Positions 47,266 to 55,578 of a stretch of 64,000 nt of DNA are shown here, in pieces (the first letter of the stretch is position 1; every line of letters starts with the position of its first letter). Below the pieces are notes generated by a model. The model was not told where the DNA came from and searched no databases. It saw nothing but the letters and a program-made list of their open reading frames with translations. A program made the position numbers and the translations under genes. Origin of the DNA: Eutreptiella sp. 'Long Island Sound 2002' (lineage: Eukaryota; Protista; Euglenida); contig OZ038378.1 in the NCBI GenBank assembly GCA_964036045.1, positions 181,970,001 through 182,034,000 of the forward strand. The letters run 5' to 3'.

Positions 47266-48044
47266 GAATGACCGAGTAATTCGGCTGCCCAGCAGCTGCA
47301 CTTCGAAGACAAAGGGGTCCAGCCCATTTTGACCCAACCGCCCCTGAACACCCCCCCTCTCATAGACATTTGGGACAAAGGGGGGGGGGGGGCACAAACG
47401 AAGGGGGCGGGGGTTCTCTGAGTGAACAACAGCAACCCAGCCCCACCCTGCGACCATGCTCGACATCAAGCGTGGTCCCGCCCAATGGCTCTTGAGAACG
47501 GGAGTGGGGGGCTGGGGTGGGTTGGTGGGTGGGGGGGGGGGGGGGGCAGGGGCACAAATGGTCAGATTTGCAATCATGCAATGAGCTGCAGCCGTGCCAA
47601 GATGCTCTTTGCCCACAGTCCGATGGTGCGACAATTCCTTTGCGCCACGCAGGCAATGGTCTGTGATGAGGTACGGGCCAAGTGTCCACTGGGCACGGGT
47701 CAATGCATTGTGCTGGCCCGCCTGCTTTCTGCACTCGGCCTGTGTGCAGCACCGCCTCCAGGCTGATTCCACCGGACAGCAGGTGCCACAAAAAAGTATG
47801 CGGGGCTGTTTGTGAGCCCGTTGTACTGGGGAAGAGGTCCCCGTCTGACCGTCGTCTTCCGTGACTTGGGCCGTGACTTCAGCCGTGCTTGCGGAAGGGG
47901 GAAAGAGGGTGGGGGGGTGGGGGGTACGTCGCGGGGGGGCGGGGGGGGGCATGGGCCATTGATTTCTGCAAATTAGACTTTGCTGTGCCCCTCCGGACCG
48001 ATGACCGTCGCGGTGTCGCAGTGGTCACATGAGCTGCCGCTGGA

Positions 48045-49130
48045 ATGTGGCGGAGAGTGTCCGCCTTCGTCTTTGTGGCGCTGGGCCTTCTGGCCGCGTT
48101 GTCCCACGTCAGTCTGCGCCGCAGTCGCGGGGCGCGCCCCCGGCCCCCGGGTAGCCCCCCGCACCGGACCCCGCGTCCGACCGCCGGCGAACCGGAACCG
48201 CAGGCCGCGCGCGCCGCTGCAGCCGCGGCCGAACCGCGTGTCCTCCCCCGAACGACGGTGCAGACGGGCCGTTGGGTCGTGGTGGCCGCCATCCTGACGC
48301 CTGGGGCCCCGGCAGCGCAGGTGGGTCTCTTCGTGGCATCGGCGGTGGAGCACCTCGCGCCGTCTGTGGACGTGGTGCTGCTGACAGACCCCAGCGCTCG
48401 GGCTCAGTATCAGGCCTACCTGAACTCTGTCCCGCGCCCCAGCGCCGGCCCCCGGCTTTCTGCTTTTCCGGCGAACGGCGTGTGCGTGACGGAGCCCTGC
48501 GCCGAGCCTCTGGACACCCGGCGGTTTGCAGCGCACGCGCAGTTCTTGAGCCACTCCCCCGGGGCCTATGAGGCCGCGTTGCTGCTGAACGGCGGGGACG
48601 CCCACGTGCAGTCGGACCCCTTCCAGGCCCGCAGCCCCGCGCCCGGCGTTGCACTGTTCCCGGAGGCCATCCCCGTCGCAGATGCCGGGGTGTACCCCGC
48701 CCTGCGCGTCTGCTTTGCGACGCGCAGGCCCGGCCTCCCCAAGCGTGACGCCCTCAATGGCAAGGCCGTCATGGGTCATCCGGCTGCGCTCCTGAAGTTG
48801 CTCCGCGCGTACAACGACACGCTGTCGCGCGCGCGTGCGTGCCGCGCTGCAGCACCAAAGATCCTGCACAGCCTGGTGCTCCATTCCGTGGCCTACGCGC
48901 AGCCCCAGGCCGACCTTGGGCTCGCCGTCCTCGGCACTTCCGCGTCCCCTGTGGTCTCCCTCGCGCATTGGCCTTCCCGGACCCGCACATACGTTTGGAG
49001 TCCCAGCGCTCTTCAGGCGCTGAGGCGGTTTGGGCATACGCCGGCGGTGGTGCAGCACAGCGCGGAGCACCCCGCGCTGTTCTGCTACTGGCACCTTCGC
49101 CACGGCCTACCTCTGCCCCGTCACCCGCAG
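48045..49130 (+). CDS. Membrane-anchored GT-like/carbamoyltransferase fusion, exon 1 of 6 (975 aa total): signal anchor, stem, glycosyltransferase-like domain
   Basis: MWRRVSAFVFVALGLLAALSHV (basic residues then a hydrophobic run), a Pro/Arg-rich stem, then RRFAAHAQFL...YEAALLLNGGDAHVQSDPF and VVQHSAEHP. Donor ccgcag|gttgct, phase 0. Confidence 0.8.
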
Positions 49131-49415
49131 GTTGCTGTTTGGTGCTCATCGAGTGATAGGGTATTGCTATTGATTGCTCATGACGTGAGAGGTGTTGCCA
49201 TCGGGTGCTCATAAAGTGGCTGAACCAATTTTGTGTTGTTCTTACCTTGCCCCCCCCGTGTCCATCCCCCCCCCCCAGGGGGGGAACCGTCACTTGGCCC
49301 ATGAACAATAAGAAATCAATAGGAAATCACAGGCGCCGAAGACGCTGAAGAAAATTTTTAGTTGGGTTATACTAGAATTGGTTGGTCGGGAGTGGTGTAC
49401 GGTCCCCCCCCCCCA

Positions 49416-49449
49416 GGGGGGGAACCGTCACTTGGTGACGGTTCCCCCC
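49416..49449. repeat. Perfect 15-bp-stem hairpin within an intronic repeat (49245-49500)
   Basis: ggggggaaccgtcac-ttg-gtgacggttcccccc; the arm gggggaaccgtc also occurs at ~49279 and ~49456. Confidence 0.85.
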
Positions 49450-49626
49450 GGGATGGGGGGGGAACCGTCGTCCCTTGGGGGGGATGGACATGGGGGGGGG
49501 AAGGTACGGTGCTCGGGTGTTGCCATTCGGTGCTCTTAAGGGGATAGGGTGGCGTTATTCGGTGCTTGCAAAGTGATAGAATGTCGCTATTGGGTGCTCA
49601 TGCAGCGATGGGGTACTTTTTTTCAG

Positions 49627-49830
49627 GTCGTCGCTGCCTTGGGGCTCCCGCTGTTCGAGCATCTCGCCCAGCACCGCACCTCCCCGGGGGGCTGCCCGCG
49701 ACCAGTGCACGGCGGGCTCGTTTGCGGCCTGCCCGTTGGGTCGCGGCCCGGGTCTGCGTACAATCTGGCGATCTCTGCGGGGCCGCATGACTTCAACATC
49801 GCCGTCAGTGACGCCGATGGGCAGGTGCAG
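49627..49830 (+). CDS. Carbamoyltransferase fusion, exon 2
   Basis: Acceptor tttcag|gtc; AISAGPHDFNIAVSDADGQVQ resembles the family's N-terminal GIxxGxHDxxAAL..DG motif. Donor cag|gtattc; an alternative donor at 49824 is also in phase. Confidence 0.78.
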
Positions 49831-51890
49831 GTATTCGCTGCCGGGGCGCTATCTGGCGGGCAGGACCTGTTTTGCTTGCTGGGGGGCGTGTAGTTTGGCC
49901 CAAAACCGCCGTCGGTTGTCTCAGATCGGCCCTGATTAGCCTCCAGTTGGTGCCAAGTGAAGAGACCACTGTGGTCCCTCCGTGTGCCTAATTATGGGGC
50001 TGACTGCTGGACGGCTTGTCTAAGATACGGCCAGGTCCCAAATGAATACTCCCCTGGGTATGTTAGATGGCGTGTCTCGTGCGTGTCATTCAAACCTGCA
50101 GCATGGAAGCTGCAAAGCCATTTGTGTTGCATCCCTATTACCCATAACAAAGTGAATGGGAGCCAAAGGAGTGGAGGACAGTCCATCATAATCGAACCAA
50201 CATGACGTAGCAAGCAACCGAAAAAGCTGAAGCATCTTGGCCCAGAGGTGAATCCGACAATGGCTGTCACGCAGACAAATCCTTATCCAAACGCCCACCC
50301 GAACAAGCCTCCAAGCAGCCCAGACGTGCAGTATTGTTTCCCGTCTTCCCTTGGGCTGAGGCAAACATGCCAAATACACAATCAAACACATATTGTGTGC
50401 ACAACTGGTGCTTCGTCGTACATTGGGTGCGTGGTGTGCCCAAATGGTCAGATGGTCGCACTGCGCCCAAGGGAGCCCCTTTGTCTGCCATTGTCTGGGG
50501 GCGGCTTGCACATCCTCAAGGCGCCACAGGTCAGGCATAAGGCACACACACACACACCCTCCCCCTTGTGAAAGCACTGCCCAGGTCCACAAAAGCGACG
50601 GCCACGCAGGGTCATGTGCCCAGACCACGCCGTGCTTGCGCGGGGGAAGGAAGGGGCACAAATGGCGCTCGAACGTGGAGACCAATGGGCTGCGGCTGCT
50701 GGATGGACCCTGGTTGCTGGTACATGCTGGTGCCCATCACGCCATCGTATCGTGACCGCAAACACCATCGCCATAAAAGCAATGGTAGCACAGAGGTCCG
50801 GGTGCACGCAAGAAGACAGCGATGGCCGCCACCCTGCAGCATCACCACGGGAAACGTCTTCGTCACTGCAGCAGGTGGGCTGAGGAATCGCGATTCTGGG
50901 GCGTCCAGCACGCCACCAATGGTACCCCCTGGAAGCGTATCCCCTCTAGCTCGCGACGGTCACCCTGGACACCCTAGCTCATGGCATAGTCTGCCATGGC
51001 TCTTGGGAATCGAACTGCCGGCCATTCATCCGCGGCCCTGCTGCATGACCAGTGACACACGCACCTCCATAGGGAAAAGCGCGGTACCAGACCAATCCCC
51101 ACGCCGCACTTGAGAGACCTGTGCTAGACCCAGCGCCACCGTCGTTTTCCTGACTTTTGCCCGGGATCGAGACTGGGCAGGGGGGGGCAGTGGGAAGCTG
51201 CAAAATATTTACATACGGTGAATGGTACGGGATGGGGGAGGGGGAGAAGTTGGCCGCCAGCTGCCGTTGGCTGCCCAGCACTGAGGATATCCGACCACTG
51301 GTGCATGGGACGAAATGCTCTCTTTGTGTTGGCTTCTGGGTTGGTGGCCGGGCTGGTGGCTGGTTGGTGGGTGGGTGTTTGGCCGGGCTGTTGTACGCGG
51401 TGCTGATGGCGATGGTGGTGGCGAGGTTGTTGGGATGGGTCTCGGCTCGGAGGTGGTTGCAGTGAGGGGGATGGCAATGGTGAAGGTGATGGAGCTGGCG
51501 TTGCTGATGCCGACACCATTCACGGCATGCATATCCCGTGCACCCTTGTCTCACCGGTGAAAAAAGTTCCACCACGCCACCTTTATGCGGCGGGAGGACT
51601 CGTCCAATGCCACACGCCCCTGGGCAGCGGATCGGAAGTAGACTCAAGTTGGCTGGTTGCAGTGGCGATCGGTTATTCGCATTGCACCGCACCAGTGCCC
51701 CCGTGCGGCCCCACTGCCCCGCTCAAAGAGTCCGGGGCCCCAAGTGAAAGTCCATCCACCCCTCGGGCACCGACACCCCAGCGCTGCGGACAAGCCCCGC
51801 TTGCCTGCTCCTTCTCCATCTGGGGAGCCCCGAATCCCTCGGTCCATTGTCACGTGCCGTAGCGGCCGAACCACACGGCCTCGTTTGCAG

Positions 51891-52469
51891 GTGCACTTGG
51901 AGCTGGGGCATATTCTCGGGGGCAGCAAGAGCCTGGGGACCTGGAGCGGGGGCGGGGGCACGCGCTTCCACGGCTGGTGGCAGCGGCTGACAGCGCTGAT
52001 GGGGCCCTACACCGGGAACGCCACCGCCTCCTTCGGCGTGCTGGCGCTGGCCACCCACCAGCGCGCGGCCAACCTCGCCTTCCAGAACTGGGTCCGGCCT
52101 CGCGTGCCGCACCAGCAGTCGCTGCTGGTGCACCACCACCACGCTCACGCCTGCTACGCTTTCTTCGACTCCCCCTTCCTCGATGCCCTCATCCTGAGCG
52201 TCGACGGCGGCGGCGACGACGGGGCGTTCCGCGTGTTCGTGGGTTCCAAACGGGAGGGCGTCGTCGCACGGCTGGACGAGCCCCACCCGTCGCCTCTGGT
52301 GCTGGGGCAGGCCTACAAAGAGGCGGCCATGATCATGCCGGCCATTGCCTCCGAGTTCCTGCCCCAGTGCTCCAACTCCACCCTCTGCCTCAACGACGTC
52401 TCGCAGGAGTTGATGCATCTTGCCGCCTTAGGGACGACCCGCAAGGCGTGGGTGCCCCTCGTTACGCAG
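51891..52469 (+). CDS. Carbamoyltransferase fusion, exon 3 (Kae1-like domain)
   Basis: Acceptor ttgcag|gtg; VHHHHAHACYAFFDSPF and LILSVDGGGD are the NodU/CmcH HHxAH and DGxGD motifs. Donor cag|gtgcgc, phase 0. Confidence 0.9.
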
Positions 52470-52976
52470 GTGCGCCAGGATGGAGGGCCCCTCGAACACA
52501 GGGTCAACGGCGGTCCACCTCTCTTGGGCAAGTGCGCACGCCGATGGAGAGGGTGGCAATGCCGAGGCTAAAATCTGAAAAAAGATTCAATTTCTACTAA
52601 GAAAATGAACACTGCCAAAAAAGTCTAATATGTAATAAGCAAAAAAGTCTTTTTGTCCTTCAGTTATTGGTTTTACTTTCTAAAGCTAAATCGGTGTTCA
52701 GAAGTACGGCTACATACTGAGTTGTGCACTGGATGTGGAAGGTGGACCAGTAATTGATTGAGTGAGTGGGTGAGCGAGTGAGAAAGGGATACAAGTTGAA
52801 AGAAGTTCCTGTTCGGACGGGTTTTGTCATGGAGAGGGGCAGCTATTCACCTTTGCGCCCCCAAAAACGTATGTCAGTAAAATGTAAAGTTTTCTCGCCC
52901 GAAAAGCCACTTTCTCCTTTTACACAACCCTGTAGACTCCAACATGCCCCACCACGGCCCCCTCACATGTGCCCAG

Positions 52977-53148
52977 GTTCTGAAGGCGCCCACGCGGACC
53001 GCACAGCGGAAGCTGCTGATGCCTTTGGTTCCGAAGGTGAGGGAGAGCGTGCAGAGCGCGATGGACTACGCGCACACTGTGCAGCTGGTGCTGGAGCAGC
53101 TCGTGATCAGTCAGGCCGTGCGGCATATTGCCGCGGCAAATGCCACAG
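52977..53148 (+). CDS. Carbamoyltransferase fusion, exon 4
   Basis: Acceptor cccag|gtt; DYAHTVQLVLEQLV matches the family's D.AxxxQxxxE helix. Donor acag|gtgtgc, phase 1. Confidence 0.85.
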
Positions 53149-53400
53149 GTGTGCCTGCCATTAGAGAACCGCGGCAGAGGGCCGGGCTGCCCCCTCCCCG
53201 AACGCTGTGTCCCTATGGCTCGCAAAGGCTGTGGCCTCTGGACACCGTGTCTGGACGCCATGTCTTCGAGGGCATTGCACGGCTTTGGGATCGGGGATAT
53301 GCCTTCCTCCGGCCCTGAGGCGTTCTCGGATTGCCTCAGTTGAGGAGAGGCTCGGGCAGAAGCGAACCCGACGCTCCTGAGGACCAGCTGATTACGGCGC

Positions 53401-53600
53401 GCTGGGGCACTGGGGCACTGGGGCACTGGGGCACTGGGGCACTGGGGCACTGGGACACTGGGGCACTGGGGCACTGGGGCACTGGGGCACTGGGGCACTG
53501 GGGCACTGGGGCACTGGGACACTGGGGCACTGGGGCACTGGGGCACTGGGGCACTGGGGCACTGGGGCACTGGGGCACTGGGGCACTGGGACACTGGGGC
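53401..53600. repeat. (ggggcact)n 8-bp minisatellite in intron 4
   Basis: About 25 tandem units; source of the WGTGALGH/PVPQCPSA ORFs. Confidence 0.97.
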
Positions 53601-54407
53601 ATGACGCTCCACAGGGCGGAGCGGTCCAGACACGCAGTGCCCCCCGCCTCCCCTTTGCCATGGCCGGGCACAGGGCATGGGCTACTGCGGGGTTTTGCCC
53701 AAGTTTCGGGGGCTGGGGGAATGACGAGCACAAAAAACGGGGTGGGGGGCCCTTGGACCGCACCACAGCCAACAGGGGCTTGGCTGAGCCAGGCCCAGAT
53801 CTCGACCAATACTATGATCCTGACGGTTCTGCATAACCCCCCGGTCTCACTGTGGCTTCGGCGCAGGGCACTCAGGGCTCAGGACAGTGGCCCAGGGCCT
53901 GGGCACAGGGCAACGGCGCGGGCAGGGGCACAGGGCAGTGGCACAGCGCACTTTGACGATGTCGTACGGCGGATATTACCGAGTGGCACATGGGACAGGG
54001 CTGATTCCTCACGAAACTCAGCTCCCCTGCCGGACACTAGTGGCACGTCTGTTCTCCCCGTTCCCCCTCAGTTCTCCCCGTCCCCCACCGTTCCCCCCCG
54101 TTTCTCCACATTTACCTGCGGTTTCCCCAATATTTCCTGAGGTGTGTCTGATATAGTGTCTAGCGCCGACGGGCGATGTGAGCAGGCGATGGCATTGGCA
54201 TTGCATTCTCCTGGCCGTAAGCGCAATTTTTGCAATTTTTGTTGTCCGAGGCACAAGTGTGTGGCCGGGAAACGGGCGCACCGAGGCACTGAGACGTGAA
54301 GGTGTCACGCCGTTGGTCCGTTTGTGCAATACCCTTGGGATGTTGTGTGTTGGGGTGCCCGTCCGGCGCAACTCCCTCATTCCAAACTGCCTTCCATCGC
54401 ACTGCAG

Positions 54408-54883
54408 TCGGAGGGGTCTCCGGGATAGTTCTGACGGGCGGTACAGCGCTGAACGTGCGGCTCAGCCACGCCGTGTACAGTCATTTTCAGCTCCCGGTAC
54501 ACGTCCCGGCTGCTCCCCACGACGCAGGCCTCTCCCTGGGCATGTTATGGGCCGTGCAGCCGCCTCTGAGCGCCCCCGGCCACCCTTTTCTGGGGCTGCC
54601 GCTGCTGGACGCAGAAGGCCTGCCGGCGCACGTTGCGGCGCACGGCGCAACCCCTGTCGGTCCGGAAGGGATCGCCAAGCTGCTGCTCCAGGGACATATT
54701 GTGGGACTTGTCAGGGGCCGCATGGAGGTGGGCCTCAACGGACTGGGCCATCGCAGTATTTTGGCCATGCCCAACAACTCCACGACACGAGAGCGCATTT
54801 GTCGCCTGTTGGGGGTATCCGAACGGGGCTATCTTGGCGTTGCACTGCTGCAGTCTGCATTGCGCCTTGTCACTCAGGACAAG
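54408..54883 (+). CDS. Carbamoyltransferase fusion, exon 5
   Basis: Acceptor ctgcag|tc completes GTC (phase 1 match); LTGGTALNV, VPAAPHDAGLSLG and GRMEVGLNGLGHRSILA. Donor aag|gtatcc, phase 0. Confidence 0.9.
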
Positions 54884-55167
54884 GTATCCTGCGCCCTCTG
54901 TCCGCATGCCTTCCTGCCCATACACCAGGGCGCTCCTTCGTCATCTCGTTTTTTCTTTGTTCTTTTGTTTGCGCTCCTGAAACAACCGCTCAATCGCCGT
55001 CGGTTACCCTCCAATCGCCGTCGGTTACCGCCCGAAAACCACTGCGTGTGGGGTCACCCTTTTTCCTCTTTTTTTTTTTTTTGGATTGAGAGCACCCTAC
55101 CGTACGCCCTTGTACATTATGCTTGTGCCGATGTACACGTACACCCTTGTGGACTCTTCTCATGCAG

Positions 55168-55578
55168 GTCACATCTCCGTGCATGTCTTCGGTGGTGCTG
55201 GTGGACCCTGCTGCTCGGGGGCACTTCTCAGGGGCGGTGTTGCATGACGGTACGATGCTGGTACAGACAATACAGCGCACCTTCGATGACTATTTTCATG
55301 AGATTTTGGAAAGGGTCTCTGATCTTCGTGGTCCTTTGAGGTCCAAGCCGCACGCCAGCCCTATCAACAACGTTCCCTCGAAGCCAAATCATGCCGGAGA
55401 CCACCAATCCCACGCTACATTCCCTGCAGTTTTAAACGTGCCCTTCCGGCGGCGGACCGCAGGGCTGGCCACCCACGTGCACAAAGTGCTAGAATTTCTG
55501 ACACTCCCAACTGGGCCAGATTTTGTGGTCGTGGAGGGTTGGCTGTTCTCAAGAAGGGCCAATGCTGACCCCAACTGA
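55168..55578 (+). CDS. Carbamoyltransferase fusion, exon 6 (YrdC-like C-terminal part)
   Basis: Acceptor atgcag|gtc; SPCM, GAVLHDGTMLVQTI and AVLNVPF correspond to the family's SPFM, AVxHVDGTARxQT and LNTSFN motifs. Stop TGA at 55576-55578. Confidence 0.85.
   Translation, partial: VTSPCMSSVVLVDPAARGHFSGAVLHDGTMLVQTIQRTFDDYFHEILERVSDLRGPLRSKPHASPINNVPSKPNHAGDHQSHATFPAVLNVPFRRRTAGLATHVHKVLEFLTLPTGPDFVVVEGWLFSRRANADPN

Follow-up and report, generated by a model that had tools for sequence, protein, structure and literature searches.

The locus described here raises the question of whether a euglenid gene that joins two enzyme folds encodes a glycan-carbamoylating enzyme of the secretory pathway, or a protein that has retained these folds for another use. 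The gene occupies positions 48045 to 55578, on the plus strand, of a 64,000-nucleotide (nt) stretch of Eutreptiella sp. 'Long Island Sound 2002' (contig OZ038378.1 of assembly GCA_964036045.1, positions 181,970,001 to 182,034,000), hereafter the window. An earlier note, made from the sequence letters, had described it as a fusion of a glycosyltransferase-like domain with a carbamoyltransferase of the NodU/CmcH/TobZ type, and had proposed that the product carbamoylates surface glycans. On balance, we consider it somewhat probable that this multi-exon euglenid gene encodes a maintained but repurposed secretory protein, in which a domain of the GT-A glycosyltransferase fold is fused to a class III carbamoyltransferase-like module; that it carbamoylates glycans, as originally suggested, is improbable.

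The gene was rebuilt from the window sequence, and this yielded six exons and a product of 975 amino acids with a single terminal stop, the same length as in the earlier note, whose claim of six in-phase GT-AG exons is borne out. The five introns (496, 2060, 507, 1259 and 284 nt) all start with GT and end with AG, with every junction in phase. An in-frame stop lies 15 nt 5′ of the ATG, and neither a stop nor a frameshift interrupts the 2,925 coding bases. G+C content is higher in exons than in introns; at third codon positions (GC3) it is 0.82-0.91 in exons 1-4, compared with 0.40-0.58 at second positions (GC2), and it is lower in exon 5 (0.71) and exon 6 (0.61). An alternative model of 952 amino acids, which uses an identical GTATCC donor 69 nt upstream at 54815, was rejected, as it scored 136 rather than 151 bits and deleted the KxR region. 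The donor at 54884 was preferred because it scores 15 bits higher against the carbamoyltransferase profile described below and retains this conserved block. We also observed a 376-codon open frame on the minus strand (47973-49103), antisense to exon 1, in a region of 72% G+C; this frame is most likely a by-product of composition, and the length of an open reading frame (ORF) alone means little here.

The two domains are connected through exon 2. Residues 10-35 of this exon match residues 341-366 of the Euglena gracilis homologue P0001 (BLASTP, E 4e-4) collinearly, and in both proteins its distance from where the exon 1 match ends is exactly 12 residues. The spliced protein aligned to P0001 as one segment (80-397 against 32-366) with 83 bits, compared with 72.8 bits when the intron was retained, and the homologue P0003 likewise aligned across the exon 1/2 junction (residues 329-399). 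Exon 2 continues without a stop or a methionine into LAISAGPHDFNIAVSDADGQ, and residues 409-434, which span the exon 2/3 junction, fall collinearly on columns 4-29 of the bacterial carbamoyltransferase profile (hhalign, P 0.004). No methionine occurs between residue 243 and residue 467, so that the carbamoyltransferase part lacks its own start codon. Homology thus supports the exon 1-exon 2 join and places the fusion point inside a single exon, in agreement with the earlier claim of an in-frame carbamoyltransferase fused to exon 1.

Catalysis by class III carbamoyltransferases has two stages. Carbamoyl-AMP is first formed from ATP and carbamoyl phosphate by a YrdC-like domain; a Kae1-like domain then transfers the carbamoyl group with a metal bound by two histidines and two aspartates, which are H133, H137, D156 and D333 in GdmN (PMC9633730). 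The catalytic signatures are KxR...SxN and HxxH...D (PMC9654439). With a profile built from 14 bacterial carbamoyltransferases that a search with exon 5 had retrieved, we obtained 151 bits (E 2.4e-48) for the spliced protein in a single alignment across exons 3-6. Profile positions 113-510 were aligned as one piece, with both ends weak but collinear, the collinear alignment extending over approximately 560 profile positions, and exons 3, 5 and 6 each matched singly in collinear order (E values in Table 1). The Pfam model Carbam_trans_C scored 38.8 bits on exon 5 (cut-off 27), and Carbam_trans_N scored 17.9 bits on exon 3 alone, under its cut-off of 24. The best solved relatives were TobZ (E 1e-4 with exon 5) and GdmN. 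Of the 51 columns in which 13 or all 14 of the bacterial proteins agree, the window protein retains 31, and it shares with TobZ, NodU, CmcH, GdmN and NovN (PF02543 + PF16861) the order of a Kae1-like followed by a YrdC-like domain. All Kae1-like landmarks are present, namely H512 and H516 (the HxxxH pair), D535, G691-G692 and N696 of the GGxxxN loop, and D719, as is an N-terminal His-Asp pair (H415-D416) at the general-base position. The two-His two-Asp metal site (H512, H516, D535 and D719) falls on columns conserved in 13-14 of the 14 members.

The YrdC-like half differs from that of class III enzymes. Its KxR...SxN tetrad is wholly replaced (K by G816, R by S818, S by P931 and N by R933), three further conserved arginines or lysines are lost in total (R791N and R870L among the changes), and an insertion of ~25 residues is found in exon 6. 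Because all four tetrad residues and three further basic residues are lost, this half is expected to have lost the ability to form carbamoyl-AMP from ATP and carbamoyl phosphate. The earlier description of a full-length carbamoyltransferase therefore holds for the length of the module but not for its catalytic residues. Class III enzymes are also soluble and mostly bacterial, whereas the window gene is eukaryotic and contains introns, a predicted secretory leader and an N-terminal GT-A domain. No close relative of the carbamoyltransferase part was found in viral contigs, and a recent viral origin of this part was rejected on that ground. The papers found on Euglena carbamoyltransferases dealt only with ornithine- and aspartate-type enzymes, and none was found on an architecture that combines a GT-A domain with a carbamoyltransferase.

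The domain encoded by exon 1 had no match in Pfam, NCBIfam or a word-index search; when the family profile was used for the latter, the only hit was one of the query members. Low-scoring profile matches to PDB sequences (designed armadillo repeats and uronate isomerase) were rejected as spurious. A first AlphaFold model from five sequences had a mean predicted local distance difference test score (pLDDT) of 66, and it matched GT6 in Foldseek (E 5e-8) and GT-A glycosyltransferases with Z 14.8. An AlphaFold2 (AF2) model from 48 sequences reached a pLDDT of 80 and a predicted template modelling score (pTM) of 0.76. Comparison of this exon 1 model using VIA-align gave 140 chains with Z of at least 8; the best 25 structural matches were all GT-A glycosyltransferases (Z 16.4 to 11.6), and the first non-glycosyltransferase stood at rank 26. 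In VIA-align, Mimivirus R699 and human collagen glucosyltransferase each reached Z 16.4 and GTB (GT6) 16.2, and the further matches included BoGT6a (15.8), Skp1 galactosyltransferase (15.3), WbbM and LARGE1 (14.8 each), UGGT (14.3) and LgtC (14.0). Retaining GT-A enzymes (GTA/GTB and BoGT6a of GT6, LgtC and glycogenin of GT8, UGGT of GT24, the collagen glucosyltransferase domain of LH3, and R699) have the same fold as the modelled domain, with Z 14-16.4 over 208-239 aligned residues and a root-mean-square deviation of 3.2-3.8, and what remains of the acidic motif after strand 4 is at the expected place. GT8 glycosyltransferases have a DQ-type motif, which the DQ...N motif of the exon 1 family resembles. 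These enzymes differ from the window domain in that no Pfam or PDB match to it exists at the sequence level and that it carries N-G-G-D and has lost DQ...N and HQYDR. On these models, exon 1 is assigned a GT-A glycosyltransferase fold, and the earlier term "glycosyltransferase-like domain" is right as to fold and family. A family hidden Markov model (HMM) built without the window sequence recovered the domain with 108 bits (E 2e-35).

The motif that the earlier note had pointed out, RF..Y..FL.. with an NGGD stretch, was located at residues 160-193, and it is a degenerate form of the family motif. The window domain retains 11 of the 31 columns conserved at ≥85%, whereas the 86 relatives retain 30 in the median and never fewer than 16, and the euglenid members 22-25; it is thus the most degenerate among 87 members. 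In the family motif D-x-R-D, the first aspartate is present in all 86 relatives and the arginine in 98%, whereas the window protein has N182-G-G-D185, in which the second aspartate is retained. Cys238, Gly240, the DQ...N motif and H337, Q338, D340 and R341 of HQYDRHP are also lost; RF, Y, D185, Q189, D191-P-F, E207, G244 and H342-P343 are shared with the family. Because the first aspartate of D-x-R-D, DQ...N and HQYDR are lost, canonical metal-dependent sugar transfer by this domain is unlikely.

Relatives of this domain were sought by a full HMMER search of 1.84 billion representatives with exon 1 as a single sequence. The search returned four proteins, three from Euglena gracilis, Dinema validum and Eutreptiella and a fourth from an ENA contig, and all eukaryotic relatives found are euglenid. 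Searches with the family alignment yielded two metagenomic relatives, at least 300 loci in bacterial and archaeal species representatives of many phyla, and 45 viral contigs; neither Pfam models nor PDB sequences matched the family. Members at L004-L083 (bacterial genomes), L002 and L003 are ~280-300 amino acids long and have the motifs D-x-R-D-V-x-F-Q-x-D-P-F, DQxxxN, HQYDRHP and RF..Y. The bacterial ones typically lie in surface-polysaccharide or O-antigen clusters, where their neighbours include GT2, GT61, GT8, Wzy_C, DegT aminotransferase, Acyl_transf_3 and polysaccharide deacetylase genes. The euglenid members share the hydrophobic leader and a Cys-containing tail with the window protein, which is the sole member seen fused to a carbamoyltransferase-like module, the others standing alone at ~280-500 amino acids. 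None of the four homologues of the exon 1 domain carries a carbamoyltransferase, and on contig L001, which encodes the stand-alone relative P0004, no carbamoyltransferase follows downstream. Inheritance from a bacterial operon was rejected for this sample, as none of the 82 bacterial loci had a carbamoyltransferase within 10 kb of the family gene. The failure of the single-sequence search to find another fusion is weak evidence of absence, because the same search missed hundreds of bacterial relatives that were found later by the family alignment.

We propose that the 975-residue product would enter the secretory pathway through its N-terminal hydrophobic leader, and that its coding sequence would have been kept while its function was repurposed, with no carbamoyl-AMP synthesis of its own and probably no canonical sugar transfer. 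It might act as a non-catalytic binding or scaffolding pseudoenzyme of the lumenal glycan machinery. Alternatively, it might be a Kae1-type transferase fed with an activated donor from another enzyme, as Kae1 relies on a separate Sua5/YrdC protein in t6A formation. Kae1/TsaD with separate Sua5/TsaC, which form t6A in tRNA, offers a precedent for a Kae1-type metal site that uses an acyl-adenylate made by another protein (PMC9654439). The analogy concerns mechanism only: the sequence affinity of the window protein is with carbamoyltransferases rather than Kae1/TsaD, and it is predicted to belong to the secretory pathway, not to the cytosol or mitochondrion. The window protein is ~30% identical to its nearest homologue. 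That frame, splice sites and codon bias are intact despite so low an identity argues that the divergence arose under continued selection for the open frame, and for this reason we read the gene as repurposed rather than decayed.

Several points weigh against this reading. Erosion of both active sites is also the picture of a decaying gene. Five sequencing runs contained the locus, all of genomic DNA and with collinear contigs that include the introns, and no RNA run did so. HMMER found no near-identical protein among the 1.84 billion representatives, and among the E. gracilis proteins derived from a transcriptome that the library includes, the only match was a relative of 35% identity. Whole-protein comparisons were made with local HMMER, BLAST and hhalign profiles only, and the residue calls rest on alignments of ~26-30% identity, among which the C-terminal one is weak (P 6e-4). 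A silent or recently inactivated gene, that is, an intact-looking relic no longer expressed or selected, would account for the lack of an RNA run, for the absence of the gene from protein libraries that do hold the E. gracilis relative and for the two eroded catalytic centres; the repeat insertions in introns 1 and 4 and the fall of GC3 in exons 5 and 6 also favour it. We nevertheless regard it as unlikely, though not negligible, because the coding bases are free of stops and frameshifts, all five pairs of splice sites are canonical, the G+C bias across codon positions is strong, and neutral accumulation of such divergence would have broken the frame.

The insertion in intron 1 resembles a miniature inverted-repeat transposable element (MITE), with 30-nt terminal inverted repeats that are 93% complementary and with G/C homopolymer runs. 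Because its summed depth in the genomic contigs of the DNA runs is hundreds to ~1,400 times that of the single-copy flanks, it is considered a very high-copy repeat of the genome. Intron 4 contains a perfect-looking octamer array at 53402-53601 (CTGGGGCA, 25 copies), at which the contigs of three of four DNA runs break or thin, and a second repeat at 53950-54149 with ~40-90 times the flanking depth. The few contig joints in the DNA runs fall in repeats. In each of runs X1 and X3, one contig joins 50563 to 53825 with 40 other letters between; since the shorter side of this joint has only 21 letters, it is more probably due to a repeat at another place in the genome than to a deletion allele.

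The leader bears on where the protein would go. Residues 5-23 are strongly hydrophobic (Kyte-Doolittle ~2.0) within a modelled helix over residues 2-27, small residues before S20 are compatible with a cleavable signal peptide, and an N-terminal hydrophobic segment is present in all four homologues of the exon 1 domain. The following residues 22-76, modelled as disordered, include 11 Arg, 11 Pro and 10 Ala among 55 positions. Entry into the endoplasmic reticulum (ER) is likely, and the hydrophobic segment 5-20 with its disordered stem may fit a type II anchor, a cleavable signal peptide or a plastid presequence alike. The hydrophobic leader and Pro/Arg linker that the earlier note had read as a Golgi anchor and stem are indeed present, but they are not specific to the Golgi, as Euglena plastid proteins use a similar ER leader (PMC6242988). 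Such proteins enter via the ER with a signal peptide, and in class I presequences this is followed, 60 ± 8 residues later, by another hydrophobic domain (PMC6242988). A class I presequence, which would direct the protein via ER and Golgi to the stroma or envelope of the plastid, would concern location only and could be combined with any of the functional readings. It agrees with the hydrophobic stretches at 5-21 and 77-99 (uncharged), whose spacing of 55 residues is within this range, and with a spacer that holds three acidic residues and is rich in Arg, Ala and Thr. The linker is, however, unusually rich in proline, and P0001 of E. gracilis, like P0004, has a short leader only. Stretch 77-99, moreover, corresponds to the first strand and the first helix of the GT-A fold (pLDDT 81-93) and is homologous in relatives. 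Because the second stretch is part of this fold, we treat plastid targeting as a minor and rather improbable rival.

A more speculative form of repurposing can also be considered. A euglenid secretory protein family may have arisen from bacterial or viral carbamoyltransferases with only the Kae1-like site surviving, and the window member, joined to a GT-A-derived glycan- or nucleotide-binding domain, would put carbamoyl or acyl groups on lumenal glycans from a donor made elsewhere. We hold this to be distinctly unlikely; if true, such acylation at a Kae1-like site would be a route of glycan modification undescribed in eukaryotes.

The glycan carbamoylation first proposed requires more, namely a bifunctional enzyme active in the lumen, with a GT-A domain that adds a sugar and a carbamoyltransferase that O-carbamoylates surface glycans. 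In its favour, the protein has a predicted secretory leader, both folds and an intact Kae1-like transfer site, and two independent large viruses pair a member of the GT-A family with an intact carbamoyltransferase in one cassette. These pairs were seen at three viral loci that represent two distinct viruses, one at L107 and another apparently shared by L115 and L117. The carbamoyltransferase there is of class III and intact, with KHREWFRPF and NTSFN, and a distant family member is encoded 3-4 kb upstream of it. The cassette encodes, in order, a GlcNAc-type glycosyltransferase, the family member, an unknown ORF, HtrL_YibB, GT_PLOD with an FkbM methyltransferase, and the carbamoyltransferase; a Peptidase_M23 gene and an IMPDH/GMP-reductase-like gene were observed nearby. 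Its gene content suggests that large viruses make carbamoylated glycans, and it is a precedent for the pairing of both modules in glycan construction rather than evidence for activity of the euglenid protein. In the latter, all four KxR...SxN residues and further basic residues of the adenylate site are replaced, and the GT-A domain has lost most of its conserved columns, among them the leading acidic residue of the metal motif, together with DQ...N and the histidine-bearing HQYDR. None of the 82 bacterial loci showed the pairing within 10 kb, and we know of no supply of carbamoyl phosphate in the secretory lumen. The inference of glycan carbamoylation thus finds little support, and we judge an active enzyme very unlikely.

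Finally, a gene-model artefact, in which a neighbouring GT-A gene and a carbamoyltransferase-like gene were wrongly joined, can be set aside as highly improbable: no transcript proves the join, all four homologues of the N-terminal domain stand alone (345-501 amino acids), and the non-conventional introns and trans-splicing of Euglena lie outside our gene model, but exon 2 carries both the C-terminal tail of the GT-A family and the first Kae1-like strand in a single open frame, the carbamoyltransferase part lacks a start of its own, and all junctions are in phase.

Table 1. Features of the fusion gene and of the viral cassettes that pair both modules; positions are those of the window or, where a contig is named, of that contig.
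Feature	Position	Strand or orientation	Content and basis
Exon 1	48045-49130	+	Leader, linker, GT-A-fold domain
Start codon and N-terminal hydrophobic segment, residues 1-25	48045..48119	+	Putative signal peptide or type II signal anchor
Arg/Pro/Ala-rich linker or stem, residues 22-76	48108..48272	+	Composition; pLDDT ~50
GT-A-fold domain, residues 77-362	48273..49130	+	AF2 model, structure matches, family HMM
Degenerate family motif LLLNGGDAHVQSDPF	48579-48623	+	Inside the GT-A domain
Intron 1	49131..49626	+	496 nt, GT..AG; contains high-copy MITE-like element 49243-49506
Exon 2, fusion point	49627..49830	+	Residues 363-397, GT-A family tail (CPRP...C); residues 409-430, Kae1-like start including H415-D416
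Exon 3, Kae1-like domain	51891..52469	+	Profile match E 9e-10; GdmN aligns over exon 3 stretch; conserved columns retained
Metal ligands in exon 3	H512 52134-52136; H516 52146-52148; D535 52203-52205	+	Profile alignment
Exon 4, middle of Kae1-like domain	52977..53148	+	Ends in phase 1; collinear within the single 148-bit domain match; weak match alone
Exon 5, end of Kae1-like domain and first half of YrdC-like domain	54408..54883	+	GGTALN; D719 at 54521-54523; profile match E 6e-26
KxR position, G816-V-S818	54812-54820	+	Exon 5; profile alignment
Exon 6 and stop, second half of YrdC-like domain	55168..55578	+	Profile match E 1.4e-6; C-terminus, hhalign P 6e-4
NTS(F/L)N motif, present as NVPFR	55435-55449	+	Exon 6
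Viral cassettes	L115:8586-15263; L117; L107:8537-16062	Co-directional	IMG/VR contigs of 75-184 kb, ~35% GC

If the gene is silent, it would be an ordinary gene-fusion relic in a repeat-rich genome. We know of no other eukaryotic secretory-pathway protein built from a carbamoyltransferase of the TobZ/NodU type, and the window protein, if expressed and functional, would be the first one known, as well as a natural case of a Kae1-like site parted from a working YrdC-like partner. The GT-A-fold family to which its N-terminal domain belongs, and for which there is no Pfam model, is widespread, occurring in at least 300 bacterial species, where it is found in polysaccharide clusters, in 45 viral contigs and in euglenids. 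A functional product of the gene would show something of how the two-step machinery of carbamoylation can be dismantled and put to new use, and would bear on Euglena glycan chemistry, of which little is known.

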